This document shows, piece by piece, positions 9,389 to 32,592 of a stretch of DNA of 64,000 nt (the stretch's first letter is position 1; every line of letters starts with the position of its first letter). A program made the position numbers and the translations under genes. The DNA is taken from positions 279,387 through 343,386 of the forward strand of contig NIVC01001181.1 in NCBI GenBank assembly GCA_002269645.1, in the 5' to 3' direction. The notes under the pieces are model-generated. The model was given only the letters and a program-made list of their open reading frames with translations, was not told the origin of the DNA and searched no databases. This DNA is from Macrostomum lignano (Eukaryota).

Positions 9389-11011
9389 ATGCTTCGACAG
9401 ATTCTGCCGTCGCAACTGACGAGTCTAGCGGACTCCGTTTCTCCCAATCGGACAGCAGCTACAAGAAGGCCATCGCAACTGCCGCGATTCCCGCCGCTCT
9501 CGGGGCCTACGTCCTCTACTACTGGCGACAAGGACGCGACCTCCCTCCCGGTCCTGTAGGCCTGCCTCTCATTGGCCGTCTGCCATGGACCGATCCGAAG
9601 AACTTGCACCTCACGATGCAGAAAGTGGCAGAGAAGTACGGCGACATTACTTCGTTCTACCTTGGCTCGCGCCTGCTCATTGTGCTCAACTCGTACCAGA
9701 TGATGAAGGAGATGCTGGTAGACTACAACTTTGCTGGTAGACCGAGACTGCGTCTGTTCTTACAGCTGACCCGCGACTGCGGCATCATCTTCACGGAAGT
9801 CTGCGAACTCTGCGAGACTTCGGCTTTGCTAGAGCGGAAACTGTCGAGATGGTCGACGATCGACTGGACTCCATCTTCCAGACGCTTGATGAGGCCGCGA
9901 CGTCGGTCACACCGATGGAGGTGCTCGGCACTTTCATTCTCGCCTCCAACTCGATCATCACTGAGATGACACTCGGTCACCGATTTGAGCGAAACGATCC
10001 CGAGTTCTTGAAAGTCAATGCATTGATGAAAAAACTACCTGACGACGGCATAACCGAATCAGCAAGTGTCTCGTTTCCGATCATTGACAGATTGAGTGAG
10101 CTGTTTGGTCTATCAAGCAGCGTTGTTCAGAATCTAGAGTACCTGCACTCGTTCATACGGAAAGGGATCCAACAGCGTGAGAAGATAATGGTGGATGAAA
10201 GTACGGAACCCGAGTGTCTCTACGATGTATATATCCAGGTAAAAACTCGAATTCAGACAGGAGCACAAAAACACAAATTATTTTTTAACAGCTGAAACTT
10301 TAACGATTTGATTGCCACCATGACTACTTATTAGGAAAAGCGCAAGTCTGAGAAGGCTGGCGACTTTGAGACGTTCAAGGATTTCCAGCTCATTCGAGTG
10401 TGCTTCGAGTTCTACCTGGCCGGCACTGACACGACCGCCCGATCGATGGAGTGGCTGCTGCTCTACATGGCCTTCTATCCGGAGGTGCAGGACCGAGTCC
10501 AGAACGAGCTCGACTCCGTAATCGGTCAGTCGAGACGTCCACGGATGCAGGACAGGACAGAACTGCACTACACCAGCGCTGTCATCGACGAGACCTACAG
10601 AAAAGCTTCGCTGGCTGCCATCGGAGTTTTCCATCGCTCAGTGGAAGACGCAACCTTCCACGGCTACCGGATCCCAAGCGATACGATCATCATTCCGAAC
10701 GTGTACGGCGTCCACCACCGAGCCGAGTACTGGGAGAGACCGAACGAGTTCTACCCTGAGCACTTTCTCGACAACAAAGGTCGCTACCGGAGCAGTCCGT
10801 ACCTCATCCCGTTCCTGATTGGTCGGCGCTCTTGCGTTGGCGAGTCTCTGGCGTGAATGGAGATTTTCCTGTTCTTCACGGCCATCATGCAGCGGTACCG
10901 GGTGCGGCCGGAGCTGGAAAGTGCGGCAAGAAGAAGGACGACATTCCGTCTGGTCGTCTTGGAATTTTGCGGATGCCGGGGCGATACCAGTTGATTATGA
11001 GCCGTCGATAG
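9389..11011 (+). pseudogene. Cytochrome P450 (CYP2 clan) pseudogene, copy 1; exons 9389-10238 and 10335-11011
   Basis: Aligns to the intact copy 2. Lesions: 1-bp deletion in the T-run at 9438-9440, 31-bp deletion at 9797/9798 (removes the C-helix WxxxR), CGA>TGA stop at 10854-10856, and a 2-bp insertion near 10929. Exon lengths 850 (=882-32) and 677 (=675+2) match these exactly. GT-AG intron of 96 bp. AGTDTT, ETYR, PEHF and FLIGRRSCVG motifs are retained. Confidence 0.9.
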
Positions 11012-11976
11012 ACCTTGATTGATATTTTTAGAACAAAAGTAGCTTCTGTTGTTTTCATTTGGCCCTGCACATGATAAAAATTACATTTTTACCCAGAAGT
11101 TGCTTAATTATAATCGTTCTTAATATCTCCAAGATATTCCAGTCCTTATATGTATGGTACGTGCACCTGCAAAGCGCTTAGCGAGTGGTTCGCTCAGTTG
11201 GAATAGTAGCTGAATAGCAACTAGCTATACTGTAACACCTATTACTTGATTTACCCTTATCGTTCTAGCGTCTGTCTGCTTTGTGGCCTCGTTGAGTTGT
11301 TTTTGGTCTTGTGATAATCGTGGTCTAAAATTAGCCAAAAGTTCTGAGTAAAACTTTTCATAAGTAACTACGGCTATCAAAAGTTACTTCGAATCGAAAT
11401 CGTTTAATTACACCACTTCCTGTATGCTATTTTAACGTCCAAGAATGGCACATGTTTATAAAACCGATCAGTGAAACCCGTCAGCAGTTTTTACGAGTGC
11501 ATAGGCAAAATATTCTATGCTTCTATCTACTCCGAGCATATGCGCTTATCAGCTACAAAAATATAAAATGCATCACTCGTGAAGTCACTTGTTATTAGTG
11601 TAACAATAACAATAATTAATAGGTACCAAATTTTAAAGACAAAAAAGTTTACTCTACTTTTTTTTAACACTCGTATTTATTTTATTTCACAAAAAGATGT
11701 AAACTGTGATATGACTGGCTAAGATTCTAAGAACATATTCAAATACTGCGATAGCTACAATAAAAAAACTGCTTTCTGGAAAAAGTAGTCTTGAAAAAAA
11801 GAATATAGTGTTCAGTGAAATTTTTCCACTGTGAGAAATAACAACGTAAATTCAATCCAATGTGCTAAGTGTAGCTAAAATTGATGTTTCAAACTGGTCT
11901 CGTCACGTCAGATTTTAAATTGAAAACAATGGATATGTACGCACAGTTCAGAACCAGAACCTGGCGATCAGGAGAC

Positions 11977-13607
11977 CTAACGGCGGTCGAAAATCAGACG
12001 GTATTCCCCTGGAATACGCAAAGATCCCATCCAACCAGATAGGATGTCATCCTTCTTTGCCGCACTCTCCGGGGCCGGCCGCACCCGGTACCTCTGCATG
12101 ATGGCCGTGAAGAACAGGACAATCTCCATTCGCGCCAGAGACTCGCCAACGCAAGAACGCCGACCAATCAGGAACGGGATGAGGTACGGACTGCTCCGGT
12201 AGCGACCTTCGTCGTCGAGAAAGTGCTCAGGGTAGAACTCGTTCGGTCTCTCCCAGTACTCGGCTCGGTGGTGGACGCCGTACACGTTCGGAATGATGAA
12301 AGCATCCGATGGGATCCGGTAGCCGTGGAAATGGGTTTCCTCAACGGCTCGGTGGAACACTCCGATGGCAGCCAGCGAGGCCTTTCTGTAGGTCTCGTCG
12401 ATGACAGCGCTGGTGTAGTGCAGTTCTGTCCTGTCCTGCATCCGTGGACGCCTCGACTGACCGATTACGGAGTCGAGCTCGTTCTGGACTCGGTTCTGCA
12501 CCACCGGATAGAAGGCCATGTAGAGCAGCAGCCATTCTATCGATCGGGCGGTCGTGTCAGTGCCGGCCAGGAAGAACTCAAGGATTACGCGTATGAGCTG
12601 GAACTCCTTGAACGTCTCAAAGTTGCCAGCCTTCTCAGCCTTGCGCTTTTCCTGTGAGAAAGTTAATCAAAGATATTGCTGTTATTTATACGACTATAGA
12701 AATAGTAAAGCCTAAATTCACTCACGTGGATGTAGACATCGCATAGACATTCCGGTTCTGTGCTTTCGTCGACCATCACCTTCTCACGCTGTTGGATCTC
12801 TTTCCGTATGAACGAGTGCAGATATTCAACATCGTGAACGACGCTGCTTGATAGCGGGAACAGTACGATGAATCGTTCAACAGCTGGGAACAAAGCGCTT
12901 GCCGTTTGAACAATGCCCTCTTCAAGTAGTTTCTTGATGAGCTTGTTGACCTTCTGAAACTCGGGATCGTTTCGCTCAAATCGGTGACCGAGTGTCATCT
13001 CAGTGATGATCGAGTTCGAGGCGAGAATGAAAGTGCCGAGCACCTCCATCGGTGTGACCGACGTCGCCGCCTCATCAAGCGTCTGGAAGATGGAGTCCAG
13101 TTGATCGTCGACCATCTCGACAGTTTCCGCTCTAGCAAAGCCGAAGTCTCGCAGAGTTCGCAGACTCAATCGACGATGCTGGCTCCACATGTATCCCTCC
13201 GTGAAGATGATGCCGCAGTCGCGGGTCAGTTTTAAGAACAGACGCAGTCTCGGTCTACCAGCAAAGTTGTAGTCGTCCAGCATCTCCTTCATCATCGGGT
13301 AAGAGTTGAGCACAATGAACAGGCGCGAGCCAAGGTAGAACGAAGTAATGTCGCCGTACTTCTCTGCCACTTTCTGCATCGTGAGGTGCAAGTTCTTCGG
13401 ATCGGTCCATGGCAGACGGCCAATGAGAGGCAGGCCTACAGGACCGGGAGGGAGGTCGCGTCCTTGTCGCCAGTAGTAGAGGACGTAGGCCCCGAGAGCG
13501 GCGGGTATCGCGGCAGTTGCGATGGCCTTCTTGTAGTTGCCGTCCGATTGGGAGAAAACGGAGTCCGCTAGACTCACCAGTTGCGACGGCAGAATCTGGC
13601 GAAGCAT
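11977..13607 (-). CDS. Cytochrome P450, CYP2 clan, copy 2; exons 13607-12726 and 12651-11977; 518 aa
   Basis: N-terminal hydrophobic anchor, PPGP hinge, WSQHR (WxxxR), I-helix AGTDTT, K-helix ETYR, PEHF and heme motif FLIGRRSCVG. Phase-0 GTGAGT...CAG intron of 74 bp. The spliced frame is open. Confidence 0.95.
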
Positions 13608-14675
13608 TTTTGTTTACTTCTTCGCTAGTAAGCATAACACTCCTTCAGGCTTAGGGCTCACAGAAGGGTTTTCTGTTTTGCGAAAGCTCTTTAGCTAGTG
13701 TGTAAATGCTTTTCTTATCAGTTACCCCCATGCTGTTGGGCAGGCGTATACTTTGAGTACATTCTCCTTGTACGGTTAGGGCAGAGTGTACACTGTGACC
13801 GGTGTACACCCTAGTTAATTTTGAACACACAGGCTAGTAGCTCGTACAAGAGGGCTTTGCAGAGTGTGAGGGTAAGGAATGAAAAGAGGATGGCAGGAGG
13901 TACGGTTTGCTGGATTGTTTAGCGTACGTTATTAATTCCAATGGAAAATACCCAGGCCATGGCTGCAGCTATTTAATTATTTTGACAAAAATCAAGCCCG
14001 AGCAAAAAACACCTACACTGCATTGTCGTTTACAGAAAGCCGAAAGAGATGCAAGATGAGAACAAAAAAGTCTTTGCAGAACAGTAGCAAGCAAAAAATA
14101 GAAGTGGCTCATATTTATATGCAAATGCAATATTGCCCTCACCTACAGTTGCATCAAGGCAAGTTAACGCTGCCGCAAGCAACTCCGAAGGTCAAAGATT
14201 ACTCAAACCAATTTACAGGTGGTTCAGACCGATTGTAAACTGGAATAGAGTTAGCTCAATTTAGTTTTGATTTTTTATTTTTCTTCTCAATAATAACTTG
14301 CTAGACTTTATGTTCAACTGTGCAATCGTTAACTGTAGAAGTTTTGAAAAGGTGGGCAAGATAAGCGTGGACATTGCGCAATCTCCTTTTATGCTCTGGT
14401 TCAATATACTTAATCTGCTACAAAGGATCTGGCTAAAAACAAGGTTGTCTATAGACTACTTTTGGAGAATTGGATTTGCTAAAAAGCCATCACATCGCAA
14501 CCTATCAAATCATCAACTGCTTTCTTCACAGTTTCTTGTAACTCTTGACAAAAGAAAGACCAAATGGTTTTATCCAAATAATGTCTTTTTCAAACCCTCA
14601 GCATCTTCTTAAAGGTCAGAAATCTTTTTAGGGAATAGATGTTCCATGCTAACTGTTTCCTTATTCTGCCTGCAA

Positions 14676-14987
<312 letters not shown>

Positions 14988-15651
14988 TCGTGGTGTTGTG
15001 CCTTCTCATTAGTGCACTCATTAGTTCGCGAATCTTTCCAATCAGAAACTGAAGCCTGTTTAAAAGATAAGAAACTGCCTATACCGTTCAGTGTCTATAA
15101 GATTTGGAGGTTACGCGCAAATGCGTCATATGCAGCATTAAAGATGGCTAAGCTGGCTTCAGCACAAACTATTTTTAGACACCCTTTCAACGCAGCTTTA
15201 TCGCACAGAATGAGCCCAGAATGAGCTCGCTCTTCAAGCTTGGAATAATAGCGAATGCAGACTGCAGAGGCAGATTTAGACTCACAGGGCCATACAGCAG
15301 GGTATGAGTTTCAGGGCTAAATTAAAATGCGCATAACCGGTTGCAGATAAAATGCACTATAACAATTAACCTTAGCCTGAGATGCCCTCTACTGTTCGAT
15401 TCGCGTAATGGGTTGGAATAGTGAAACAAATTGCTTAGTCTTAGCTGTAGAACTGCTTTACTGTAGGTATACTGACGCACAGGGTTGCTTGGCATCATGG
15501 ACAACTAAATTAGAAGATCGTTCGGCGGGGTGGAGGCCAGGTTGGGGCAGAGGCCACTCGGACAGTAAATTTATTTGGCCTTTGCGCATAAAAATTGGTC
15601 AGGTGGTTGCTGTGCGATTCAGAAAGCTACTGTACACCCTGTGTGAGCGTG

Positions 15652-16340
15652 GGAGCTGGACAAGCCAGTTGCTGTTGCGGCGAGTGTCGGCCTGGTGGTC
15701 AACACTCAGAAGACCGTCGTGCTCTGCGTGGCGGACGACATCGAGGCTGCGATTTTGTGCCGAGGCGCTAATGGACAGGCGACAGAGCTTCCGCGTTGTC
15801 AGCAGTTCGTCTACCTCGGCGGTCTGGTTCCCGGCGTCCGCGAGGATTTGCGGCGTCGCCGCGGGCTTGCCTGGGCTGCCTTTCGTTCTGTGAGGGCAGT
15901 CCTGCAGTCCGAGGCCTTACCTGACCGCCAAGAGGGCGGCGTTGTTCCAGGCGTTGATCGAGACCGTCCTGCTGTACAAAGCCGAGACCTTGACGCTGAC
16001 GGAGTCGCTCGAGCAACAAGTTGACGCGGCGCCTTCAAGATCGGCTACGAGCGAGTGACCAACGCGGCTTTGTATTGCCGCGACGGCCTAGTCCGTCCAA
16101 GCGACCTGTTGCGCCGACGGCGACTCCAGCTGGCAGGCCACATCATCCGCGCCAAAGTCGTACTGCGCACAGCCGGTGCAGGAGGTGCTGCTGCTAACGC
16201 ATATCGCATAGGCAGGCCCGAACTCATCGACTGCAGCCTGCTGGCTGACGCCGGCGCCCCGGATTCGGCTGGCGGAGTGGCGTTCATTCGCGACCCGGCC
16301 CTGAGGCGCGCCCTGTGACGCTGAACGCGTATTTTGTTGT
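15652..16340 (+). mobile_element. 5'-truncated RTE-like non-LTR retrotransposon with 10-bp TSD
   Basis: Frameshifted RT C-terminus (VGLVVNTQKT...FVYLGG...RRRGLAWAAF...ETVLLY...RRRRLQLAGHIIRA), (TGT)n tail, and direct repeat TGTGAGCGTG at 15642-15651 and 16341-16350. Confidence 0.85.
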
Positions 16341-16934
16341 TGTGAGCGTGTGTAGTGCATGAGTGCGTGCCTGCATACAGTATCGGCGCCCTTGTTTGTG
16401 CTCAGGAGTCACCGGGGAATGAGCAGAATTGCCTCAGAGCTGCCGAAGGCCGCGCCAGAATGATAGCAATTTTCAGGGTTTCCTTCTAGATTCTTATATT
16501 TCTAAAAAGCAAGTCCCTGCAAGAAATCTTTAAGAGAACACAACTGATAAATAGTGCTTTGCAGGTTCTAAAATTCGTAGCCAGACCTGTGTTGTCTCAT
16601 AACTTCAACTCTGAGTGAGTTGAGTAACACAAAATGACGAAACTCTTCTCTAGTCGCTGAGCGCTTACCTGCGTAGAGAACCGAGAAGGTTGTCTAGCAA
16701 AGCTGCGATAGAAAAAGAGACTTGAAAACCTGTTTTAGGTGGGCAGAAGTACAATGCAGCTAATTTTAGATTTACCCTCTAAAAGTTTTAGAGGGCTACA
16801 ACTGGAAGAAGCTCGGACAATCGAAAAAAGAAGAATGGAAAATAACCTGGGTTGCGCGAGCATAAAAGGGGCTGAATTATGCTACTAGCATTCAGTTTCT
16901 ATATAGCTGCTCTTTGCACAAGCCACAAGCCAAA

Positions 16935-18591
16935 ATGGCGTCACTAAGCGGGCTTCTGCCAGGCCCATTGTCTACTAGATCGCTATTGACGAGCTTGTTG
17001 AACCTTGAGAATGACAAAAAATGGCTTTTTCTGACAGCTGTTCCTGCAGCCGCCGCTGCTGGGGCCTATCTATTGAACCGCTGGGTTCGAAACCGCGACC
17101 TCCCCCCTGGCCCCGTCGGTGTCCCAGTGCTCGGCCGAGTGCCTTGGTCTGACATGGACAACATCCACCTGACTATGGCGAAGGAGTGCGAAAGATACGG
17201 CGACATCTGTTCGTTTTACCTTGGCTCGCGACTATTCGTCATCGTGAACTCCTACCCGCTTATGAAGGAGATGCTGGACGACCAAACGTTCGCCGGACGA
17301 CCGCAGATGTCATTTATGCGACGAGTTACGCGCGACTGTGGAATCCTCATCAAAGAAGGCGAGCAGTGGAGCCGGCACCGTCGGTTGAGTCTCAAATCGC
17401 TTCGCGACTCCGGCTTCGCGCGCCTGAAAACGATCGATATGATCGACGACCAGCTGGACATCATCTTCGAGTGCTTCGACAGATTTTCCTCGTCTTGCGC
17501 GGGCTAAAGTGGTGAATAGCTTTCTGCTGGCTTCGAACTCTGTCATCACCGAGATGACGCTCGGCAAAAGGTTTGATAGGAATGATCCGCACTTTCAAAA
17601 GGTGAACTCCAACATCAACGACCTGATTCAACTTCGCCTGTTTCAAAGTGCCCCATTTCTATACAAAGCGGTTGAACTGCTCGTCTCCGTGCTGCCAATG
17701 ACCGATGCGAGAATTGTCAAAGCAGATTTCGTGCACAACTTCATCCAAGAGGAAGTCCGGAAACGCCAGAAGATCATGGAGACGGAGGGAGCTCAACCGC
17801 GATGCCTGTGCGATACGTACCTGCTAGTAAGCTATGACATATAAATTATTAGAATTAAAGTCCAGCAGAATTCTATAATTGAGGCAACTTCAAAAAAACT
17901 TTCTAATCGCTTCCAGGAGAAACGAAAAGCCGAGAAGGCTGGCGACTTTGAGACGTTCAAGGAGTTTCAGATCGTTCGAGTGTGCTTCGAGTTCTTCCTG
18001 GCCGGCACTGACACGACCGCCCGATCGATGGAGTGGCTGCTGCTCTACATGGCCTTCTATCCGGAGGTGCAGGACCGAGTCCAGAACGAGCTCGACTCCG
18101 TAATCGGTCAGTCGAGACGTCCACGGATGCAGGACAGGACAGAACTGCACTACACCAGCGCTGTCATCGACGAGACCTACAGAAAAGCCTCGCTGGTAGC
18201 CTGTGGTCTGTTCCACAGAGCCGTTGAGGAAACCCATTTCCACGGCTACCGGATCCCCAGCGATGCTGTGATCCTTCCGCGGGTGTACGGCGTCCACCAC
18301 CGAGCCGAGTACTGGGAGAGACCGAACGAGTTCTATCCCGAGCACTTCCTCGACAACGAAGGTCGCTACCGGAGCAGTCCGTACCTCATCCCATTCCTGA
18401 TTGGTCGGCGCGCCTGCCCGGGCGAGTCTCTGGCGCGAATGGAGATTTTCCTGTTCTTCACGGCCATCATGCAGCGGTACCGGGTGCGGCCGGAGCCGGA
18501 GTGCGCGGCCCGCAGAGAGGAGATCCTCACCGGTCAGCTCGGAGCGGTGAGAATTCCTGGTGAAAATCGACTCATATTAAGTCGTCGGTAA
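16935..18591 (+). CDS. Cytochrome P450, CYP2 clan, copy 3; exons 16935-17826 and 17917-18591; one frameshift near 17500 (pseudogene or sequence error)
   Basis: All P450 motifs are present (PPGP, WSRHR, AGTDTT, ETYR, FLIGRRACPG). Exon 1 is 892 bp (3n+1) and the frame shifts between FSSSCA and KVVNSFLLAS. GTAAG...CAG intron of 90 bp. Confidence 0.85.
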
Positions 18592-19249
18592 GGCTTTGGT
18601 TTAAGACAGCTTTTGTCAGCGACATTCTAAGCATGTTTTTAAGACAAAATTCAGCTTTAATATCATAGCTTATATTTATTTCAACAGCCTAATCCGTGTA
18701 TAAGTGAAAGATTGACTCCATTGATTTTGTCAGGATGTAGTACTTGAAGTATTTCGGATGGCTCAACACTTTCTTCTTTTGTAGTTATTAGCATGATAAA
18801 TAATAGCGCTGAAAGCAAACTGCGATTTATGCTTAAATAATAATTATAAGCTGTGTTCTCTTCCAGTTTTGAAATTTAGCAATGCGTAAGCCGTGACTCG
18901 ACAGTACTACTTGTTAGCTTAGTAGCTACATTGGTATTTTTTCTACTTTTTTAAATCTATGCAATTTTACATTCCCTTCTATAATAGAGAAATAAGCGCT
19001 TGATATGCTACTCAGCAAGTAGATATGCAATACAACAATTAGAGAAAACTAAATTTAAAGTTGGGTTGCCGAATATCAGTGTATTTTGTTATGTTTCTAA
19101 AAATAGGAGTAAAAAATTAACTAATACGTAATGTAAAGCTAGACAAATTTTCTTGAGAATAAGAGGCCATCCAGGTAATGTAAAGTTTAACGCCAGAATC
19201 AAACTTGAAGTGCAGCTACGGATCAAGCTGTTGCCAATCGATAACGTTT

Positions 19250-19470
19250 CTAGGAACGGGATGTCTCCAGGCGTTTCTAAGAATGGGATGCCTCTGTGTT
19301 TTTAGAAATGGGAAGTCTTGGTGTTTCTAGGATTTGGATGTCTCGGCGTTTCTAGAAATGGGAAGCTTTGGCGTTTCTAGGAATGGGATGTCTCGGTGTT
19401 TCTATGATTGGGATATCGCGGCGTTTCTAGGAATGGGATGTCTGTCTCTGCGTTTCTAAGAATGGGATGT
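19250..19470. repeat. Degenerate ~30-bp minisatellite (GCGTTTCTAGGAATGGGATGTCTC core)
   Basis: About 7 imperfect tandem copies. Confidence 0.8.
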
Positions 19471-20044
19471 CTCGGTCATTCGAGTCATCTGGTTGAAAGT
19501 TTCATGAAGCAGAATCTTAGCAACAATTTTTGTGAAGCTTCTTTGGATAGCTTGTTACACTGCAAGGTCAGTGGACTATTAAAGGAGATGCTTTGTTTCT
19601 TCAGAAAATTTTGTTGAAAACATTTTGCAGACCCATTGTGTCTTGTAGTTTATTAGTGCATACTGTACTTAGAAGTGACACTAATCTAAGCGAACTGATC
19701 GAACAGCTGCACGCGAAAAAATGGGGGTTAAACTAAAATCATTGAATGGCCTTGAAGAATCTCATGCCCTCTGTTTGTACTCTAGCCTTACAAATAATTA
19801 CCTTTAGGGGTCGTTTTTAGCCTCTCGGGACCAGCTTAAGGTCGGAGAAGCGTACTCGAGTACAGGCCTCGGACCATGCAGTGTATTTGAGCGCTCCTAA
19901 ATCTCTCAGCGTCTCCAAGGTATATGTAGCTGCGTACATTACGTAAAATCTCAACCCCCCCCCCCCAAGAAACCTGTGCACACACAGCGCTGCATAAGTT
20001 CGTGGTACGTTGTACATTCGTCAATTGTTTATGCAATATAAAAT

Positions 20045-20056
20045 GCAGATATAAAA
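20045..20056 (+). promoter_or_regulatory. Candidate TATA box of CYP copy 4 (GCAGATATAAAA)
   Basis: About 85 bp upstream of the ATG. The same 12-mer occurs upstream of copy 5. Confidence 0.4.
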
Positions 20057-20135
20057 TTTTCTAAACGTTTAAAAAATAAGACAACAAAAAAACTTTGCCA
20101 GCTGTCAAGAAGACGAATCTAAAACTCAGCTACAG

Positions 20136-21992
20136 ATGGAAGGAGTCATAGAAATGCTACCGAAATCCTTAGCCAGCCTCCTAGGGGATAATTTCTATAC
20201 GGTAGCGGCACCAGCGGCCGCGGGACTTGCCGCGGCGTACATGCTGTACTCTTGGCGACAGGGTCGCGACCTGCCGCCCGGACCCGTAGGCCTGCCCGTG
20301 CTAGGACGGTTGCCATGGATAAGTCGCAACCAGATGCACCGAAGCATGATGAAGATCTGTCAACAGTACGGCGACATCAGTTCGTTTTACCTTGGCTCGC
20401 GACTGGTTATTGTAGTGAACTCGTACCCGCTGATGAAGGAGATGCTGGACAGTCAGATGTTCTCCGGTAGGCCTCAGCTCCGCCTATTCAAGAAGCTGAC
20501 CCGCGGCTGCGGCATCATCTTCACGGAGGGCGACGTCTGGAATCAACAGCGACGCTTAAGTCTGCGCACTCTACGCGACTTCGGCTTCGCTAGAAAGCGG
20601 ACGGTGGAGATGGTAGACGAACAGCTCGATAGCATGTTCAACGGCTTTGACGAGATCGCCGCTCTGTACGAGCCAGTCCAGCTGCTAGAAACCTTCCTAC
20701 TGGCTTCAAACGCCATCGTCGCGGAGATGACGCTTGGACAGAAGTTCGAAGCCGACGATCCAGCTATGAAGCTGGTGAACGCCATTGTCAAGAAGCTGAT
20801 AGAAGATGGCATCATTCAAGGTGTGGAGTTCCTGTTCCCAGCTATGGAACGGCTGGCTGACCTCGTGCCGGCCTCGAGCAGTCTTGTTAGCGACACCGAG
20901 CGCCTGCACGACATGATTCGGGGCCAGATTCGCAAACGCGAAGCGGTGATGAAAGATGAGAGCGTTGAGCCGCAGTGCCTCTGCGATGCCTACATTAAGG
21001 TGAGCTAGTAACATCTCGACCTAACGCAATCAATCGATAAAGTTTTCCTGCAGCGAGATTCTCCCGAAACAGAGCTTATATATAACTACTAATGCTTTTT
21101 TGGAATTCTCAAAGACACATACTTTGATGACACGTTTTGCCCTCTCACAATACTTAGCACAATAGAGAGACCTAACCAGTTACTTTGGATTGCTACAGAA
21201 GTTTTCGTGGTCATTTTGTAAAGAAGAAGACAAAAAAAACAGCCAGGTATTCGGTTGTTTACTCGAGCGCGTGTCATCATGTCACCCCATATTGCTCGGC
21301 TTTGCAACTAATTTCAGGAGAAGCGCCAAGCTGAGAAGGCTGGCGACTTTGAGACGTTCAAAGAGCACCAAATCATCCGAGTGACCATGGAGTTCTTCCT
21401 GGCCGGCACTGACACGACCGCCCGATCGATGGAGTGGCTGCTGCTCTACATGGCCTTCTATCCGGAGGTACAGGACCGAGTCCAGAACGAGCTCGACTCC
21501 GTCGTCGGTCAATCGAGGCGTCCACGGATGCAGGACAGGACAGAACTGCACTACACCAGCGCTGTCATCGACGAGACCTACAGAAAGGCCTCGCTGGTCG
21601 GTACTGGAGTTTTCCATCGCTCAGTGGAAGACGCAACCTTCCACGGCTACCGGATCCCGAGCGATGCGATCATCATCCCACTGGTTTACGGCGTCCACCA
21701 CCGAGCCGAGTACTGGGAGAGACCGAACGAGTTCTACCCTGAGCACTTTCTCGACGACGAAGGTCGCTACCGGAGCAGTCCGTACCTCATCCCGTTCCTG
21801 ATTGGTCGGCGTTCTTGCGTTGGCGAGTCTCTGGCGCGAATGGAGATTTTCCTGTTCTTCACGGCCATCATGCAGCGGTACCGGGTGCGGCCGGAGCCGG
21901 AGTTCGCCGCCCGCAAAGAGGAGATCCTCGCTGGATCGATTGGGGCTTTCGTGTTTCCCGGCGACTATCAAGTCACGATGGACCGGCGCTGA
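20136..21992 (+). CDS. Cytochrome P450, CYP2 clan, copy 4; exons 20136-20999 and 21318-21992; 512 aa
   Basis: PPGP, WNQQR, AGTDTT, ETYR, PEHF and FLIGRRSCVG motifs. Phase-0 GTGAG...CAG intron of 318 bp. The spliced frame is open. Confidence 0.95.
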
Positions 21993-22954
21993 TGCCAGCT
22001 GAATCAGAGCTTGACCATAGTGAAAACTGTCACGGTCTGTCTAAAGAGCAAACTGCTATAGTTTATTCTATCTTTTTATACGGAAGCACATTAGCCGAGT
22101 AACCGATACAATGGTTTTAACTGGCTAAGTATAAAAATCTGAAGAGTAACTTTAGAGCTTACGAGATATTTATAAGAGTTAATTGATAATTGTAATTCAG
22201 TGTATTTTTGTGTAATCGTGTCCTCCCAGACAAAATAGAGATATCTTTTATGCTTTTTTTGTTCTTTAACTTTTAACTCCCTGACAGATAGACATAAAAT
22301 AAATTCAGATCGACGTTTTACAGTCGAAAACTGACACTACAGCCTATGATCATATGGTTCAAAAATGGTAAGTAGCCTACTCTTAGTAGCGCATCGCGTG
22401 CGCTTTCGTTTCGAAGCAAAAGGGTTAGCTATTTCTAATAACCACAAGTATTGCATTAATATTATCTACACAACAGTCTCCTCCTCTATCCGCTGTCTCC
22501 TCATCTATCCGCTGTCTCCTCCTCTATCCGCTGTCTCCTCCTCCTCTCCGCTGTCCTCTTTCTCAACACTCTCCCCACTCCCTCTATCCCTCATATTTAC
22601 TCCTTCAGCTCAAAAACGTTCATTATAAACAACGCTATTCTAATTTCTAGTACTGCGTACTACTTTTCAATCGGATTCTTTCTGTTTGTCCCGCCCCTTC
22701 AGAACTTTCCTTGTTTTTCTGTCTCCCACAAACTCCCCCACCCCTAAACCGACCCAACTTACTTCAGTTCGCCAGTCCAAAAAGTCGCACAGAATGCAGA
22801 ACCGGAAATCCCCCCGGGAGAGAAATGAGGCACAACTTGCAATCGTAGTAGCAATATTTTCGCTTCAAAACTTCTAGTGCACAGAAGAGCCAATTAGCGA
22901 AATAATTTTACCCTCCTAGTTTAGAGTCTTTTTTAATCAGTCTCCAAGTCTCTA

Positions 22955-25575
22955 GACCGATTCAAATACAGACTTAGAAACCGATTCAAATACAGACTGT
23001 AGCGACAGATTCAAATACAGACTTACAGACAGATTCAAATACAGACTGTAGCGATAGATTCAAATACAAACTTAGAGACCGATTCAAATACAGACTTACA
23101 GACAGATTCAAATACAGACTGTAGCGATAGATTCAAATACAGACTTAGAGACCGATTCAAATACAGACTTACAGACAGATTCAAATACAGACTTAGAAAC
23201 CGATTCAAATACAGACTTACAGACAGATTCAAATACAGACTTAGAAACCGATTCAAATACAGACTTAGAGACCGATTCAAATACAGACTGTAGCGACAGA
23301 TTCAAATACAGACTTACAGACAGATTCAAATACAGACTGTAGCGATAGATTCAAATACAGACTTAGAGACCGATTCAAATACAGACTTAGAGACCGATTC
23401 AAATACAGACTTAGAGACTGATTCAAATACAGACTTACAGACAGATTCAAATACAGACTTAGAAACCGATTCAAATACAGACTTAGAGACCGATTCAAAT
23501 ACAGACTGTAGCGACAGATTCAAATACAGACTTAGAGACCGATTCAAATACAGACTTAGTGACCGATTCAAATACAGACTGTAGCGACAGATTCAAATAC
23601 AGACTTACAGACAGAGACAGATTCAAATACAGACTGTAGCGATAGATTCAAATACAGACTGTAGCGATAGATTCAAATACAGACTTAGAGACCGATTCAA
23701 ATACAGACTGTAGCGATAGATTCAAATACAGACTTAGAGACAGATTCAAATACAGACTAAGATACCAATTCAAATACAGACTAAGATACCGATTCAAATA
23801 CAGACTGTAGCGATAGATTCAAATACAGACTTAGAGACCGATTCAAATACAAACTGTAGCGATAGATTCAAATACAGACTTAGAGACCGATTCAAATACA
23901 GACTTAGAGACAGATTCAAATACAGACTATAGCGATAGATTCAAATACAGATATACAGACCGATTCAAATACAGACTTACAGACAGATTCAAATACAGAC
24001 TTAGAGACAGATTCAAATACAGACTTAGAGACCGATTCAAATACAGACTGTAGCGATAGGTTCAAATACAGACTTAGAGACCGATTTAAATACAGACTTA
24101 GAGACCGATTCAAATACAGACTGTAGCGATAGGTTCAAATACAGACTTAGAGACCGATTCAAATACAGACTTAGAGACCGATTCAAATACAGACTTAGAG
24201 ACCGATTCAAATACAGACTGTAGCGATAGGTTCAAATACAGACTTAGAGACCGATTCAAATACAGACTTAGAGACCGATTTAAATACAGACTTAGAAACC
24301 GATTCAAATACAGACTGTAGCGATAGATTCAAATACAGATTTAGAGACAGATTCAAATACAGACTAAGATACCGATTCAAATACAGACTAAGATACCGAT
24401 TCAAATACAAACTGTAGCGATAGATTCAAATACAGACTTAGAGACCGATTCAAATACAGACTTAGAGACCGATTCAAATACAGACTTAGAGACCGATTCA
24501 AATACAGACTGTAGCGATAGATTCAAATACAGACTTAGAGACCGATTCAAATACAGACTTAGAGACCGATTCAAATACAGATTTAGAAACCGATTCAAAT
24601 ACAGACTGTAGCGATAGATTCAAATACAGATTTAGAGACAGATTCAAATACAGACTAAGATACCGATTCAAATACAGACTTACAGACAGATTCAAATACA
24701 GACTAAGATACCGATTCAAATACAAACTGTAGCGATAGATTCAAATACAGACTTAGAGACCGATTCAAATACAGACTTAGAGACCGATTCAAATACAGAC
24801 TTAGAGACCGATTCAAATACAGACTTAGAGACCGATTCAAATACAGACTTAGAGACCGATTCAAATACAGACTTACAGACAGGTTCAAATACAGACTTAG
24901 AGACCGATTCAAATACAGACTTAGAGACAGATTCAAATACAGACTGAGACAGATTCAAATACAGACTTAGAGACCGATTCAAATACAGACTTAGAGACCG
25001 ATTCAAATACAGACTGTAGCGATAGGTTCAAATACAGACTTAGAGACGGATTCAAATACAGATTTAGAGACAGATTCAAATACAGACTGTAGCGATAGAT
25101 TCAAATACAGATATACAGACCGATTCAAATACAGACTTACAGACAGATTCAAATACAGACTTAGAGACAGATTCAAATACAGACTTAGAGACCGATTCAA
25201 ATACAGACTGTAGCGATAGGTTCAAATACAGACTTAGAGACCGATTTAAATACAGACTTAGAGACCGATTCAAATACAGACTGTAGCGATAGGTTCAAAT
25301 ACAGACTTAGAGACCGATTCAAATACAGACTTAGAGACCGATTCAAATACAGACTTAGAGACCGATTCAAATACAGACTGTAGCGATAGGTTCAAATACA
25401 GACTTAGAGACCGATTCAAATACAGACTGTAGCGATATATTCAAATACAGACTTAGAGACCGATTCAAATACAGACTGTAGCGATAGGTTCAAATACAGA
25501 CTTAGAGACCGATTCAAATACAGACTGTAGCGATATATTCAAATACAGACTTAGAGACAGGTTCAAATACAGACT
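22955..25575. repeat. Variant-repeat minisatellite, 24/25-bp units with constant core GATTCAAATACAGAC
   Basis: About 108 units. Tails are TTAGAGACC, TGTAGCGATA, TTACAGACA or TAAGATACC. Confidence 0.95.
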
Positions 25576-26583
25576 TTATTTGAATCAATCGCGAAAACTC
25601 TGTTTGAATCGCGAATAAATTTGCTCTCATTTCATGCCAGAAGAAAGTGTCGTATTTTAAGTGCAAATGCAAATGCAATGCAAATGCAAAAGTGCAAGCT
25701 CTGATTCCGTGCCATTTGCACTAAATAATCTCCCTCATAGCCACAGGCTCCACAGCTCCAAATGCAGAGGTCACCGAGTTCAGAAAAGTGTAGACTAGCT
25801 CTGCCGTAAAAAAGCCCCTAAAAACCACATAAAAGCCCGGCGCAGCTGGTTTCTCTCACCGCAGTAAACAGCTTCCCAGAAGGTGAGAAACACTACAACC
25901 ATTGTTTACTGAGGGCCCGACCTGTAGCACCCGCCCCTCCCCCACCCCAGAGGTCTAAAAACTGATTCTGTACCGGATTTGTATCGGGCGTGACCCTGCA
26001 CCGCTTGCAGTTAGTTAGCTTTCTAGCATGCAGAGAGCAGTGAACTGGCCTTGCGGGGCCGCGTGAGAGACAGAGAATTCAGGGCATACTACGAATGCTT
26101 GGCAGCAGAGTATAATAGGTGTTATGCAGAGAATTAGTGACAGGGGTTTTACCCTGGGTCGTCCCCTTCACCCTCGCCTCTCAATTCACAATGCAGTGCG
26201 GCTTAAGTGCACTAAAGGGTGGGGCATTATTCAGGTCTCAAAACTGTCAACTCTCAAAAATACCTAAATGACAGGTTCGCAATTCTGCAAGCAAACTACA
26301 GCTAGACTCAATGACTCAACACATGTGGACCCTGGAAGGTCAGCGCAACTGAATCCACGGGTCTTCTTCAATGGCTATTTACTTAAAGCCTGTAATTGCA
26401 CCCATATAATTTCTTAGAAAAGTCTTCATACTGGCATGAAAGCTCCTAATTGTAGCTCTAAAACATGTGATATGGTATGAAATGGCAAATTATTTTATTA
26501 TTGATACTAATAAGCACAGATTATAACTATACTCTTACGACAGACGCGGACAAACCCTGCTAATTATCACTTTGTATTTTTAT

Positions 26584-26735
26584 TTAGTGACCAGTGTAAC
26601 TTGGTATCTGGACAATTGAACTCATATTTTAGGCTTAGTGACCAGTGTAACTTGGCATCTGGACAATTGAACTCGTATTTTAGGCTTAGTGACCAGTGTA
26701 ACTTGGCATCTGGACAATTGAACTCGTATTTTAGG
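26584..26735. repeat. 51-bp tandem repeat, 3 copies
   Basis: TTAGTGACCAGTGTAACTTGGCATCTGGACAATTGAACTCGTATTTTAGGC repeated three times. Confidence 0.9.
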
Positions 26736-28300
26736 TCTTTTGACCTCTTGTGTCTGCCGTTCATAAAAACTACTCGCATGTCATTCTGTGTAATTTCATA
26801 TGAATACCAGCTACTCTATCTTGCTTCTTCTATCTCACAAGCTCACACTACACCTCTGCAAGGCGGGGACAGTTAAAAAGACAGCCCTGGATATGTCCAA
26901 GCGTACTTTAATAAAAGCAAGTGCTTTCTAACTAGCTCATTTAAGCCTCTCTGTCTCTCTCTACCTGTCTCTCTCGCTTCGACAAACTAAACAGCCATGG
27001 AATGCGAAAACTATTTCTATTGGCATGGAATTTAGCTTAGCTATTAAACAATACAGCAACCCAAGGTATAAGAGGTGCTGTTGATGACGCTGCAGGCAGC
27101 CGGTGGGTGGAAATAGGTGCACATTCGTTGTAGGTTTTTGTTTTGTTAGTTGTTATTGTTGTGGTTGTTTTTGCTTATGTTGCAGATAGATCTTGGGAAA
27201 ATGTTTCTGCAAGTAGTTACTATAAATCAAGATGGACTATGTTTTAGTACTCCATGACTCAGAGTTCGAGTACGTACAATATTATACTGAAGTATTTAAA
27301 ATGCGCTTGAGGAGTATATAGAGAAGTCTGGGTAAGAAAGAAAGACAGGGAGAGGGAGAGGAAAGAGGAGAGCTGAATCCTTATCGTTCCAGGGTTATTG
27401 ACATGACGCGACTGGCGGAGGGGCGAGCCGAGTTCAAGTGTCTGACAACTGCCCCAAAAGTTCACTTTGCATATCATTTTTAGCCTTTTGCACTTAGGCG
27501 ACTCGTCTGAACCTGTTGCACTTTTGCCTCTCGAACTTATGCACTGCTCAAATTTCCTCCAAGTGCTCAATTCAAGATCATTTTACTTTTGAGACGGGTT
27601 ACCAACATAGATCAGAAATGGAAGACTAGCTAGGGAAGTTGTGAAGCTTGGAAATTGTGATGTCGAGTGTAAATTGTTAGAGTTGTGAAATTTCACAATT
27701 GTGAAAAAATTTAGGCTTAAAAATCTAGGCAAGTTTCTACTGAATCTGCAGGGATTAATAATATTGCGCAGATTTTGTTATAAACAGCTGGTTTTAGAAA
27801 AAGAAAGCCTATGCCTGTAGCAGAAAATGAAAAATGATTAAAAAGTGCGCGCGAACTCGCAGGCGGCCTCTTTCAGGAGGGAACAACCTCCTTTCCACTA
27901 AGGGGGAAGAGTTAGGGCAGGGTGAAGCTCACAGTGAAGTAACGAGGCTCCGGGCTGTGCCGTACGTTTGTACAGCAAAGCGGATTTCGTATATGATATT
28001 ACTCGTACCTTCGGTCAAGCCGTCTGACCTTAAACCTTAAATTAGTAAGCCTACTGGACTGGCTTTCAGTGGTGATGGTGTTGAATGGGATAAATAGGTA
28101 TAAGGTCAAAAAGCCACGAATTCAGGGTCTAGAGACACAAGAATTCTGTTGTCTGTACTAGAGGACGGTATTGGCCTCACACAGCAAGTTATTGCTAGTA
28201 TTCGTTTGGAAATGTTGTGCTTTCTGACGATTTTTCATTGATTTTTATGACAAGCTTCTAGCGGCTTTTTAGCCAAGTCAAGCTCCTAGTCAATTACATG

Positions 28301-30339
28301 TAGTGGCTATTCTAGTAGTCAATTAGTGGCTATTCTAGTAGTCAATTAGTGGCTATTCTAGTAGTCAATTAGTGGCTATTCTAGTAGTCAATTAGTGGCT
28401 TTTCTAGTAGTCAATTAGTGGCTATTCTAGTAGTCAATTAGTGGCTTTTCTAGTAGTCAATTAGTGGCTTTTCTAGTAGTCAATTAGTGGCTTTTCTAGT
28501 AGTCAATTAGTGGCTTTTCTAGTAGTCAATTAGTGGCTTTTCTAGTAGTCATTCAGCGGCTTTTCTAGTAGTCATTTAGTGGCTTTTCTAGTAGTCAATT
28601 AGTGGCTTTTCTAGTAGTCATTCAGTGGCTTTTCTAGTAGTCAATTAGTGGCTTTTCTAGTAGTCAATTAGTGGCTTTTCTAGTAGTCAATTAGTGGCTT
28701 TTCTAGTAGTCATTCAGTGGCTTTTCTAGTAGTCAATTAGTGGCTTTTCTAGTAGTCAATTAGTGGCTTTTCTAGTAGTCATTCAGTGGCTTTTCTAGTA
28801 GTCATTCAGTGGCTTTTCTAGTAGTCAATTAGTGGCTATTCTAGTAGTCAATTAGTGGCTTTTCTAGTAGTCAATTAGTGGCTTTTCTAGTAGTCAATTA
28901 GTGGCTTTTCTAGTAGTCAATTAGTGGCTTTTCTAGTAGTCATTCAGTGGCTTTTCTAGTAGTCAATTAGTGGCTATTCTAGTAGTCAATTAGTGGCTTT
29001 TCTAGTAGTCAATTAGTGGCTTTTCTAGTAGTCAATTAGTGGCTTTTCTAGTAGTCAATTAGTGGCTTTTCTAGTAGTCAATTAGTGGCTTTTCTAGTAG
29101 TCATTCAGTGGCTTTTCTAGTAGTCAATTAGTGGCTTTTCTAGTAGTCAATTAGTGGCTTTTCTAGTAGTCATTCAGTGGCTTTTCTAGTAGTCATTCAG
29201 TGGCTTTTCTAGTAGTCAATTAGTGGCTATTCTAGTAGTCAATTAGTGGCTTTTCTAGTAGTCAATTAGTGGCTTTTCTAGTAGTCAATTAGTGGCTTTT
29301 CTAGTAGTCAATTAGTGGCTTTTCTATTAGTCATTCAGTGGCTTTTCTAGTAGTCAATTAGTGGCTATTCTAGTAGTCAATTAGTGGCTTTTCTAGTAGT
29401 CAATTAGTGGCTTTTCTAGTAGTCAATTAGTGGCTTTTCTAGTAGTCAATTAGTGGCTTTTCTAGTAGTCAATTAGTGGCTTTTCTAGTAGTCATTCAGT
29501 GGCTTTTCTAGTAGTCATTTAGTGGCTTTTCTAGTAGTCATTCAGTGGCTTTTCTAGTAGTCATTCAGTGGCTTTTCTAGTAGTCAATTAGTGGATTTTC
29601 TAGTAGTCAATTAGTGGCTTTTCTAGTAGTCAATTAGTGGCTATTCTAGTAGTCAATTAGTGGCTTTTCTAGTAGTCAATTAGTGGCTTTTCTAGTAGTC
29701 ATTCAGTGGCTTTTCTAGTAGTCATTCAGTGGCTTTTCTAGTAGTCAATTAGTGGCTATTCTAGTAGTCAATTAGTGGCTTTTCTAGTAGTCATTCAGTG
29801 GCTTTTCTAGTAGTCATTTAGTGGCTTTTCTAGTAGTCAATTAGTGGCTTTTCTAGTAGTCATTCAGTGGCTTTTCTAGTAGTCAATTAGTGGCTTTTCT
29901 AGTAGTCAATTAGTGGCTTTTCTAGTAGTCAATTAGTGGCTTTTCTAGTAGTCATTCAGTGGCTTTTCTAGTAGTCAATTAGTGGCTTTTCTAGTAGTCA
30001 TTCAGTGGCTTTTCTAGTAGTCATTCAGTGGCTTTTCTAGTAGTCATTTAGTGGCTTTTCTAGTAGTCAATTAGTGGCTTTTCTAGTAGTCATTCAGTGG
30101 CTTTTCTAGTAGTCAATTAGTGGCTTTTCTAGTAGTCAATTAGTGGCTTTTCTAGTAGTCAATTAGTGGCTTTTCTAGTAGTCATTCAGTGGCTTTTCTA
30201 GTAGTCAATTAGTGGCTTTTCTAGTAGTCATTCAGTGGCTTTTCTAGTAGTCATTCAGTGGCTTTTCTAGTAGTCATTTAGTGGCTTTTCTAGTAGTCAA
30301 TTAGTGGCTTTTCTAGTAGTCATTTAGTGGCTTTTCTAG
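28301..30339. repeat. 23-bp minisatellite (GTGGCTTTTCTAGTAGTCAATTA)n
   Basis: About 89 copies with CAATTAG/CATTCAG/CATTTAG and CTTTT/CTATT variants. Confidence 0.95.
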
Positions 30340-30671
30340 GGGACAATGAGCGGTTTTTAGCAAAAGTGATCCAGACTGAACTCTAGTTGCCGTACCGTCT
30401 CATTTAAATGGAAACAAATTATTTAAGAAACTAAGATCACGCGATTAAACATATTGACTGTTTTTTACACTACTCCGCTGCAGTCGCACTCTACAAGGTT
30501 ACATTGTCTAGTCTAATTCAGAATCGTTTTGGGAAACGAATTAATTTCAGCATAGATTCTTCCATTTTTCTTGTCTGCGGTATTTGCGCCCTGAGCTTGT
30601 GTGAATAAACTTGACGAACCCATGCAGCAGCATTGCGCAAATACTCGCTGCGTAAGCGCGGTTAGACAGAC

Positions 30672-30683
30672 GCAGATATAAAA
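30672..30683 (+). promoter_or_regulatory. Candidate TATA box of CYP copy 5 (GCAGATATAAAA)
   Basis: About 230 bp upstream of the ATG and identical to the 12-mer upstream of copy 4. Confidence 0.35.
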
Positions 30684-30907
30684 ATAGCACCCTGTCGAGA
30701 GCTCTCTTTGGCAAACACAATTGGCTAAAAAGCTAAGGCACAACTGGCCACCCGCAGACACACACCGGTTGGCTGGGAGTCCCCCCCCCCCTTAACCCGA
30801 GGACTATCTAATGAAGGACAACCGCCGCTCCGCTAGACAGTAACCGCTCCCTTTACGCCTTCGTCTGTTCGCCATCTAATAAGACAGCCTACATAAGCCA
30901 AACTGCA

Positions 30908-32592
30908 ATGCAACCGCATCGCCAACTGTTCGCCGACTGGCTGCACTGGACGCTGGCGGTCACCGGCTTGGCTTCGAGTTCGACGTCCAGCAGTTCGACA
31001 ATGTGCTCGGCAGCTACGGCGATGGTAGCCGTGGCAGCCGCCGCCGCCGCCTACGCAGCCTACTGCAGCTGGAGGCGAGCTCGCGACCTGCCGCCCGGGC
31101 CTGTCGGGGTGCCGCTGCTGGGGCGACTGCCCTGGGCCGACGCCCTGTGCCTGCACCTGACGATGCAGAAGGAATGCCAGAAGTACGGCGACTTGTGCTC
31201 GTTCTATCTGGGCGGCCGACTGTTTGTGGTAGTGAACTCCTATCCGCTGATGAAGGAGATGCTGGACGACCCGGTGTTTGCGGGCAGGCCAAGACTGCGC
31301 CTGTTTGAGAAGATGACCAGGAACTGTGGCATATTTCTAGTCGAAGGCAAAGTCTGGTGCCATCAGAGACGACTGAGTTTGAGGACGCTGCGTGAGATCG
31401 GGTTCTCCGGCTCCAAGGCGGTTGGCATGATCGAGGATCAGCTGGAGCCGCTGCTACAGCAGCTGGACGAGGCAGCGGAGGCTGCGCAGCCGGTGAAAAC
31501 TCTGGACACATTTCTGCTGGCCGTAAATTCCGTCATCACCGAGATGACGCTTGGCAGGCGGTTTCACCGCGACGATCCCGACTTCAAGAAGGTGACCAGC
31601 CTGATCGCGGCCACGCTGGAGTCGGGCATCTCCGAGACCGCCTGCTTTCTGTTCCCGGCCGCCGAGAAGCTGCTGGACATCATACCGATGTCTACGCGGG
31701 TGTTTCGCGATGTCGAATACCTGAACGAGTTCTTTCGCCAGCAGATCCGACTGCGGGAGGCAGCGATGCCGGCTGGGTCCGATGTGCAGCCCACCTGCCT
31801 GTGCGATGCGTACATCCAGGTGAGACCGCTGGAAGAATTTAGAATTTGGTCCGAAGACCAGCACTAGTATAAAAGTAAACCAATTAGTGCTAAACCATTT
31901 CGTAAATTTTACAACAGGAGAAGCGCAAGGCTGAGAAGGCTGGCGACTTTGAGACGTTCAAGGAGTTCCAGCTCATCCGAGTGTGCTTCGAGTTCTACCT
32001 GGCCGGCACTGACACGACCGCCCGATCGATGGAGTGGCTGCTGCTCTACATGGCCTTCTATCCGGAGGTGCAGGACCGAGTCCAGAACGAGCTCGACTCC
32101 ATCGTCGGTCAATCGAGGCGTCCACGGATGCAGGACAGGACAGAACTGCACTACACCAGCGCTGTCATCGACGAGACCTACAGAAAAGCTTCGCTGGCTG
32201 CCATCGGAGTTTTCCATCGCTCAGTGGAAGACGCAACCTTCCACGGCTACCGGATCCCGAGCGACGCGATCATCATCCCACTGGTTTACGGCGTCCACCA
32301 CCGAGCCGAGTACTGGGAGAGACCGAACGAGTTCTACCCTGAGCACTTTCTCGACGACGAAGGTCGCTACCGGAGCAGTCCGTACCTCATCCCGTTCCTG
32401 ATTGGTCGGCGTTCTTGCGTTGGCGAGTCTCTGGCGCGAATGGAGATTGTCCTGTTCTTCACGGCCATCATGCAGCGGTACCGGGTGCGGCCGGCCCCGG
32501 AGAGTGCGGCAAAGAAGGACGACATCCTCAGGGGACACATGGGATCACTGCGAGTGCCCGGAGATTATCGGCTGATTTTCAGTCGTAGATAA
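30908..32592 (+). CDS. Cytochrome P450, CYP2 clan, copy 5; exons 30908-31819 and 31918-32592; up to 528 aa
   Basis: PPGP, WCHQR, AGTDTT, ETYR, PEHF and FLIGRRSCVG motifs. Phase-0 GTGAG...CAG intron of 98 bp. The start may be a later Met (MCSAATAM). Confidence 0.95.

Follow-up and report, generated by a model that had tools for sequence, protein, structure and literature searches.

How can paralogous genes remain nearly identical over one exon when the other has diverged to synonymous saturation, and does selection decide which residues escape this levelling? The question is raised by five linked cytochrome P450 loci of Macrostomum lignano, c1-c5, which lie at 9389-32592 of the window, i.e. 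the whole 64-kb stretch analysed, the final 64 kb of contig NIVC01001181.1 (assembly GCA_002269645.1). Positions 1977-24142 of the window match this contig with 100% identity. Comparison of the copies points with high confidence to an old tandem array in which recurrent short-tract interlocus (non-allelic) gene conversion, confined to the coding sequence and acting mainly on exon 2, would keep part of each copy uniform. Searches by tblastn with the spliced proteins recovered five P450 loci in the window, all within this interval, and no further P450 copies or fragments in the 64 kb. Each locus has two exons and a phase-0 intron that is located 28 codons ahead of the I-helix AGTDTT motif, and c2 is the sole inverted locus:

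c1 exon 1 (pseudogene): 9389..10238, + strand, placed by tblastn
c1 exon 2 (pseudogene): 10335..11011, + strand, homogenised cores 10416-10604 and 10707-10910
island I2 in c1: 10605..10706, + strand, substrate recognition site (SRS) 5 plus the next beta strands, exon-2 nucleotides (nt) 271-372
c2 exon 2 (intact): 11977..12651, - strand, homogenised cores 12570-12382 and 12279-12076
c2 exon 1 (intact): 12726..13607, - strand, placed by tblastn
c3 exon 1: 16935..17826, + strand, frameshift at 17502/17503
c3 exon 2: 17917..18591, + strand, homogenised cores 17998-18186 and 18289-18492
c4 exon 1 (intact): 20136..20999, + strand, annotated protein PAA71199.1
c4 intron, 318 bp: 21000-21317, + strand
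c4 exon 2: 21318..21992, + strand, homogenised cores 21399-21587 and 21690-21893
c5 exon 1 (intact): 30908..31819, + strand
c5 exon 2: 31918..32592, + strand, homogenised cores 31999-32187 and 32290-32493

Residues 47-483 of c4 match the Pfam p450 family (PF00067, E=1e-98), and the nearest solved structures to c4 in the PDB are CYP2R1 and CYP2B4 (E about 1e-74). The LPPGP hinge, the AGTDTT motif of the I helix, ETYR of the K helix (ExxR) and the FLIGRRSCVG Cys-ligand loop are present in all five copies, with the frame of c1 being broken. By these matches c1-c5 are CYP2-clan cytochrome P450 loci and would encode putative monooxygenases, with a role that may lie in detoxification or in biosynthesis.

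The contrast between the exons is large. According to Nei-Gojobori estimates, synonymous divergence (dS) between paralogs is 1.6 to above 2.5 in exon 1, i.e. saturated, with c1-c2 (0.23) as the exception, and 0.20-0.41 in exon 2, so that dS falls 5-10 fold from one exon to the other. In sliding windows along the genes, the proportion of differing synonymous sites (pS) is 0.53-0.78 over the whole of exon 1 (overall pS 0.72, with a ratio of nonsynonymous to synonymous proportions, pN/pS, of 0.44) and drops to 0.05-0.15 just inside exon 2, followed by two peaks. The strongest identity begins at nt 82 of exon 2, and pS climbs again in three islands that sit at equal exon-2 offsets in all copies (nt 46-81, 271-372 and 577-672), giving the following segments:

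B1: exon-2 nt 1-45, exon start, pS 0.33, 91% identical
I1: exon-2 nt 46-81, N-terminal part of SRS4, pS 0.40, pN/pS 0.44
B2 core: exon-2 nt 82-270, I-helix AGTDTT through K-helix ExxR, pS 0.07, 97% identical
I2: exon-2 nt 271-372, SRS5 and following beta strands, pS 0.45, pN/pS 0.30
B3 core: exon-2 nt 373-576, meander, Cys-ligand loop and into the L helix, pS 0.07, 97% identical
I3: exon-2 nt 577-672, SRS6 and C-terminus, pS 0.69, pN/pS 0.41

Over the five copies 78% of exon-2 sites are invariant versus 35% in exon 1; for third codon positions these values are 143/224 (64%) and 38/271 (14%). An earlier note on this DNA had drawn attention to a 68-nt and a 50-nt block said to be identical in all copies, and both are (exon-2 nt 202-269 and 370-419; 5/5 copies), being the two longest such runs. 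The intron lengths it gave (96, 74, 90, 318 and 98 bp for c1-c5) match exactly, and the peptides it quoted for the F-G region, SRS4, SRS5 and SRS6 were all found. Its statement that introns and flanks share no similarity holds in general: a blastn self-comparison found none beyond the coding sequence, in introns or flanks, save for one gapped c1-c2 high-scoring segment pair that crosses the intron. Likewise, exon 1 is heavily diverged in copies 2-5 as claimed, but in c1 and c2 the first ~685 nt of this exon are nearly the same (pS 0-0.09), a likeness that breaks off abruptly before the F-G region, after which pS is 0.36-0.76. The c1-c2 likeness, which reflects either conversion or more recent shared ancestry, indicates that long parts of exon 1 can remain nearly the same in a pair that is still similar enough. 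The description of the remaining exon-2 differences as mostly nonsynonymous does not survive counting, with synonymous and nonsynonymous changes at about 1:1 and a per-site dN/dS of 0.21-0.43.

How old the paralogs are can be judged from another species. We used one transcript (L003, P0001; Logan SRR28338165), the only one similar enough, which we call sp2. In the exon-1 neighbour-joining tree sp2 joins c4 with 98% bootstrap, whereas the exon-2 tree unites the five M. lignano copies to the exclusion of sp2. The exon-1 grouping implies that the lineage of c4 was already separate when the two species parted, and the duplications are older than the species split. Relative to sp2 the B2 and B3 cores have a pS of 0.43-0.56 for all five copies, versus 0.07 among the paralogs. 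The exon-2 sequences of the paralogs are therefore closer to each other than to the sequence of the other species while exon 1 keeps the orthology, as expected for concerted evolution. As a control, a more distant P450 of M. lignano was compared with the sequence most like it in the sp2 sample; pS was 0.82 versus 0.77, with no exon-2-specific drop. The sp2 transcript itself has a GC content at third codon positions (GC3) of 0.88 in its exon-2 part versus 0.76 in its exon-1 part, compared with 0.67 versus 0.65 for the control gene of the same sample, and this contrast may be a hint of GC-biased conversion among sp2's own paralogs.

Within exon 2 the copies are mosaics of each other. Our own permutation of exon-2 polymorphic sites, after Sawyer's method (Sawyer-type), gave a global P=0.0002 for each of the pairs c1-c5 and c4-c5; for the pair c1-c4 the value was P=0.024. 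All of the 10 possible 2:3 splits of the five copies (10/10) are seen in exon 2, and they are clustered by position, for example:

c2+c3: exon-2 nt 294-351
c3+c4: exon-2 nt 586-606
c4+c5: exon-2 nt 186-195 and 360-369
c2+c5: exon-2 nt 532-579

The Mlig_3_7 assembly is reported to contain three subgenomes, S, L1 and L2 (PMC10733133). We compared the window with two colinear versions of the cluster, H2 on NIVC01004602.1 (exons identical on NIVC01002926.1 and NIVC01002927.1) and H3 on NIVC01001527.1. Between the window and H2, each copy differs by 0.89-5.51% in exon 2 and by 0.45-1.18% in exon 1. At 54/86 exon-2 differences between subgenome copies both alleles are found in other paralogs, whereas independent point mutation would predict at most about 7% (150/672 sites are polymorphic among paralogs); this reuse of paralog alleles indicates that conversion is ongoing. 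In c5, for example, six differences lie in nt 439-579 (window 32356-32496), where the window equals c2 at 6/6 and both H2 and H3 equal c1 at 6/6, so that the segment reads as a single conversion tract that differs between subgenome copies. The c1 copy of H2 is of c3 type from nt 281 to nt 442 at least, and the whole SRS5 island falls in this stretch. Such patterns demonstrate, as far as sequence comparison allows, that the copies have passed tracts of ~100-450 bp to one another after the divergence of this neopolyploid's three subgenomes. Pseudogene c1 is involved as well, with tract exchange with c3 and c5, and is as homogenised as the intact genes, so that selection on c1 itself cannot account for the identity. 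The central proposal of the earlier note, i.e. that old paralogs are kept alike in the heme and redox scaffold by recurrent conversion, is thus borne out by the drop in dS, the conflict between trees, the mosaics and the reused alleles.

A possible mechanism follows the segment boundaries. Conversion would be seeded and resolved within the two cores, where constraint at the protein level may preserve enough uninterrupted identity for heteroduplex formation. Introns that cannot be aligned, together with the diverged exon 1, would halt the tracts in the 5' direction. The three islands would represent older sequence that is converted less often yet is still converted and swapped as modules, and they probably last mainly because divergence reduces conversion efficiency. 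Purifying selection against replacement of copy-specific active-site residues in functional copies could be a secondary factor, but it is not needed for the pattern.

Whether selection protects the islands was the other half of the earlier claim, in which the remaining exon-2 differences were assigned to SRS4, SRS5 and SRS6 as specificity islands within a constant/variable architecture. We aligned the copies to CYP2C9, the sequence of which was checked against PDB 1R9O, using what we take to be the Gotoh SRS residue ranges in CYP2C9 numbering. The variable peptides are located at 290-295 (SRS4; variable at A291, V292 and F295), 362-365 (SRS5) and 471-477 (SRS6), with variable SRS5 residues aligning with 362-366, and 15/38 SRS residues are variable compared with 40/186 outside (odds ratio 2.4, one-sided Fisher P=0.019). 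The islands therefore do include SRS4, SRS5 and SRS6, but 40 of the 55 variable exon-2 residues (73%) lie beyond the Gotoh sites. The enrichment could be taken to indicate a selected constant/variable design, in which the SRS4/5/6 islands are actively guarded by diversifying or copy-specific selection against a conversion that homogenises exon 2 as a whole. Such a design would also fit a pooled SRS pN/pS of 0.47 (SRS4 0.61, SRS5 0.25, SRS6 0.64) versus 0.29 in the rest of exon 2, and the fact that the SRS4-6 residues of c2-c5 are constant across the subgenome copies sampled, with the sole whole-island replacement in pseudogene c1. We regard it as possible but doubtful. Besides the many variable residues outside the SRS, dN/dS above 1 at SRS codons was not seen in any SRS or island by crude pairwise counts, and pN/pS is below 1 throughout and on a level with that of exon 1. 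The islands are not "hypervariable" as stated before, since neither their pS (0.40-0.69) nor their pN/pS (0.30-0.44) exceeds the value of exon 1. Synonymous divergence along the gene, on which the earlier reading had been made to depend, is indeed not uniform and drops in exon 2, but there is no accompanying excess of pN/pS over exon 1 in the islands; their high synonymous divergence makes them look like unconverted old sequence rather than selected hypervariation. Moreover, island segments are combined discordantly: nt 294-321 are of one type in c2 and c3 and of the alternative type in c1, c4 and c5; the SRS5 core is common to c1, c2 and c5; and AAIG, VACG or VGTG pairs with AVEETHF or SVEDATF across copies. 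These combinations suggest a modular exchange of islands that are not closed to conversion. The contrast between pseudogene and functional copies is the only hint of selection, and as a single event it is too few to decide. With SRS pN/pS at 0.25-0.64 and the SRS5 island overwritten in c1, protection of the islands by selection is not demonstrated, and we consider it weakly supported.

Could the cores be identical for reasons other than conversion? Constraint on synonymous sites, by codon bias, RNA structure or an overlapping antisense reading frame, would have in its favour the long antisense open reading frames over every exon 2 and the high GC3 of the cores (0.78-0.82). However, the cores reach pS 0.43-0.56 against sp2, the pseudogene is homogenised equally, the mosaic tracts are significant and mutually incompatible, and subgenome differences reuse paralog alleles, making this account exceedingly improbable. 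The antisense frames (102-151 aa; 10278-10634, 12223-12657, 17890-18345, 21282-21617 and 31909-32217) cannot be what holds the synonymous sites fixed, as these sites change freely from one species to another; the simplest account of the frames is GC3-rich codon usage combined with the sequence identity. An assembly or polishing artefact, in which short-read polishing or collapse spread the majority sequence to all exon-2 copies, is also very unlikely, even though homopolymer-type indel errors exist in the assembly (a G deletion in c4 on NIVC01004602.1), as does a chimeric annotated model (P0130). The exon-2 structure recurs in three independently assembled subgenome versions, all of which have copy-specific differences of their own, and proteins of an earlier independent assembly (UniRef A0A1I8 entries) concur; in addition, the identical blocks (<=68 nt) and the cores (about 200 bp) are far below long-read length, the flanks are unique and copy-specific islands survive inside exon 2. 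Finally, the near-identity of c1 and c2 over most of exon 1 means that one pair shares recent history beyond exon 2, and one might extend this to all copies as young duplicates, i.e. recent whole-gene duplication followed by very fast divergence or replacement of exon 1. This is barely conceivable given the synonymous saturation of exon 1 (pS 0.72), which selection on the protein cannot produce, the unalignable introns and flanks, and the 98% bootstrap support for joining c4 exon 1 to the gene of another species.

Several points nevertheless weigh against recurrent conversion in an old array, or limit how finely it can be read. The conversion events are known from sequence patterns and not from direct observation, and for a given tract it cannot be said which copy was the donor and which the recipient. 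Failure of conserved exon-1 stretches to convert among c2-c5 has to be explained by a loss of identity in the past that we infer. The comparison between species is with a single transcript from a single other species, with dS to sp2 near saturation and hence coarse timing. GC3 is 0.78-0.82 in the cores versus 0.65-0.79 in exon 1, and this modest rise makes for a weak signature of GC-biased conversion. Lastly, the assembly has occasional indel errors, and the conclusions rest on assembled contigs and not on raw reads.

Reading frames are intact in c2, c4 and c5, and c2 agrees with the annotated M. lignano protein PAA71198.1 (P0002) except for the N-terminal start of that model. Relative to c2, exon 1 of c1 has lost 1 bp near 9438 and 31 bp at about 9798. 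In exon 2 of c1 a CGA>TGA change creates a stop (10854-10856), and 2 bp are inserted at 10929-10930. H2 shares the two deletions and the insertion but not the TGA stop, and the sharing of the exon-1 deletions with another subgenome copy indicates that the c1 pseudogene is old. Copy c3 lacks a GC dinucleotide at 17502/17503 in the context GCGGGCGC, which shifts the frame in this contig; another subgenome copy of c3 keeps both bases and has an open exon 1 of 894 nt. On NIVC01004602.1 (L008 near 2462) c4 has lost 1 bp, a G, from a GGGG run, and the otherwise identical NIVC01002926.1 is without this loss. Since a homopolymer indel thus occurs in c4 in the same assembly, the c3 lesion could be an assembly error, and the frameshift may be a long-read error and not real pseudogenisation. 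The term "five-gene cluster" used before is therefore overstated for this contig, with c1 a pseudogene with four lesions and c3 carrying a 2-bp frameshift.

With respect to gene structure, the M. lignano gene P0004, a more distant P450 paralog with 48% identity to c4, lacks the intron and forms a single open reading frame of 1,512 bp (L005 3001-4512, NIVC01001617.1), in tandem with another P450 on that contig; the intron ahead of the I helix is thus not universal in M. lignano CYP2-like genes. Between c4 and c5 there are minisatellite arrays with a 24-bp unit repeated ~108 times (22954-25576) and a 23-bp unit repeated ~89 times (28301-30339), and the first of these diverges by about 10% from the other subgenome copy. 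More than 20 other arrays (17-51-bp units) and (AGAC)n, (AGAT)n and (CTGT)n tracts are spread over the window.

The homogenised cores also have practical consequences. In the annotated protein P0130 (PAA66824.1; NIVC01001527.1, L010 2045-13302), exon 2 of c4 is fused out of frame to exon 2 of c5 over about 9 kb; this chimera, the sole annotated cross-copy model, looks like an artefact. Fused P450 entries of 1,097-1,169 aa, derived from an earlier assembly, are also found in UniRef. Chimeric gene models or transcript assemblies of this kind seem to arise from the identical exon-2 cores, which will also confound short-read mapping, expression estimates, RNA interference and in-situ probes, and Macrostomum P450 phylogenies unless exon 1 is used. 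More generally, the cluster offers a case from outside vertebrates and insects in which concerted evolution limited to one domain of a detoxification-type family can be measured cleanly, and the three subgenome copies in one assembly catch conversion tracts in progress, exchange with a pseudogene included. Our literature searches found no published account of gene conversion among M. lignano P450 genes. An improbable extension is that the ~15 copies of the three subgenomes constitute a selected combinatorial system with a heme/redox scaffold held uniform by conversion, in which functional copies retain their own SRS4, SRS5, beta1-4 and SRS6 modules, with occasional reshuffling, and c1 acts as a module reservoir or sink. 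If true, this would create new substrate specificities, much like pseudogene-templated conversion in chicken immunoglobulin genes.

How does the array relate to known systems? A variable 5' part with a common 3' part recalls UGT1A and the clustered protocadherins, where many first exons are spliced to one physical set of constant exons. This is an analogy only: unlike those loci, every P450 copy owns its exon 2, intron and stop codon, and a shared-exon constant/variable locus of the UGT1A type is ruled out because each copy has its own exon 2. The SRS of CYP2 proteins were reportedly defined by Gotoh in 1992, with a nonsynonymous excess at these sites. The variable exon-2 residues here likewise include SRS4, SRS5 and SRS6 positions but, unlike in the Gotoh signature, pN/pS at the SRS is below 1 and most variable residues are not in an SRS. 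Among P450 neighbours, the pseudogene CYP21A1P and its functional partner CYP21A2 exchange exon-scale tracts, and for human CYP2D6 and CYP2D7 exon 9 conversions and hybrid genes have been described. As a pseudogene conversion partner c1 resembles CYP21A1P or CYP2D7; however, both of those pairs are young duplicates that are alike over their full length, introns included, whereas in c1-c5 only the coding cores are alike. Mollusc CYP4 and Drosophila Cyp4p genes are further cases in which exchange between paralogs has been discussed. The closest parallel is the rat CYP2D cluster, which like c1-c5 consists of closely linked CYP2-family genes, and for which Matsunaga, Umeno and Gonzalez are said to have described homogenisation of the heme-binding region by conversion in 1990 (J Mol Evol 30:155, as cited in PMC3366968). 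The rat genes have the multi-exon structure of mammalian CYP2 genes, whereas c1-c5 have two exons and are homogenised over most of one of them, in a neopolyploid flatworm host with three subgenome copies and ongoing events. The c1-c5 cluster is thus a clear case of a process long known in P450 clusters, since 1990 in rat CYP2D, and not a new gene architecture.

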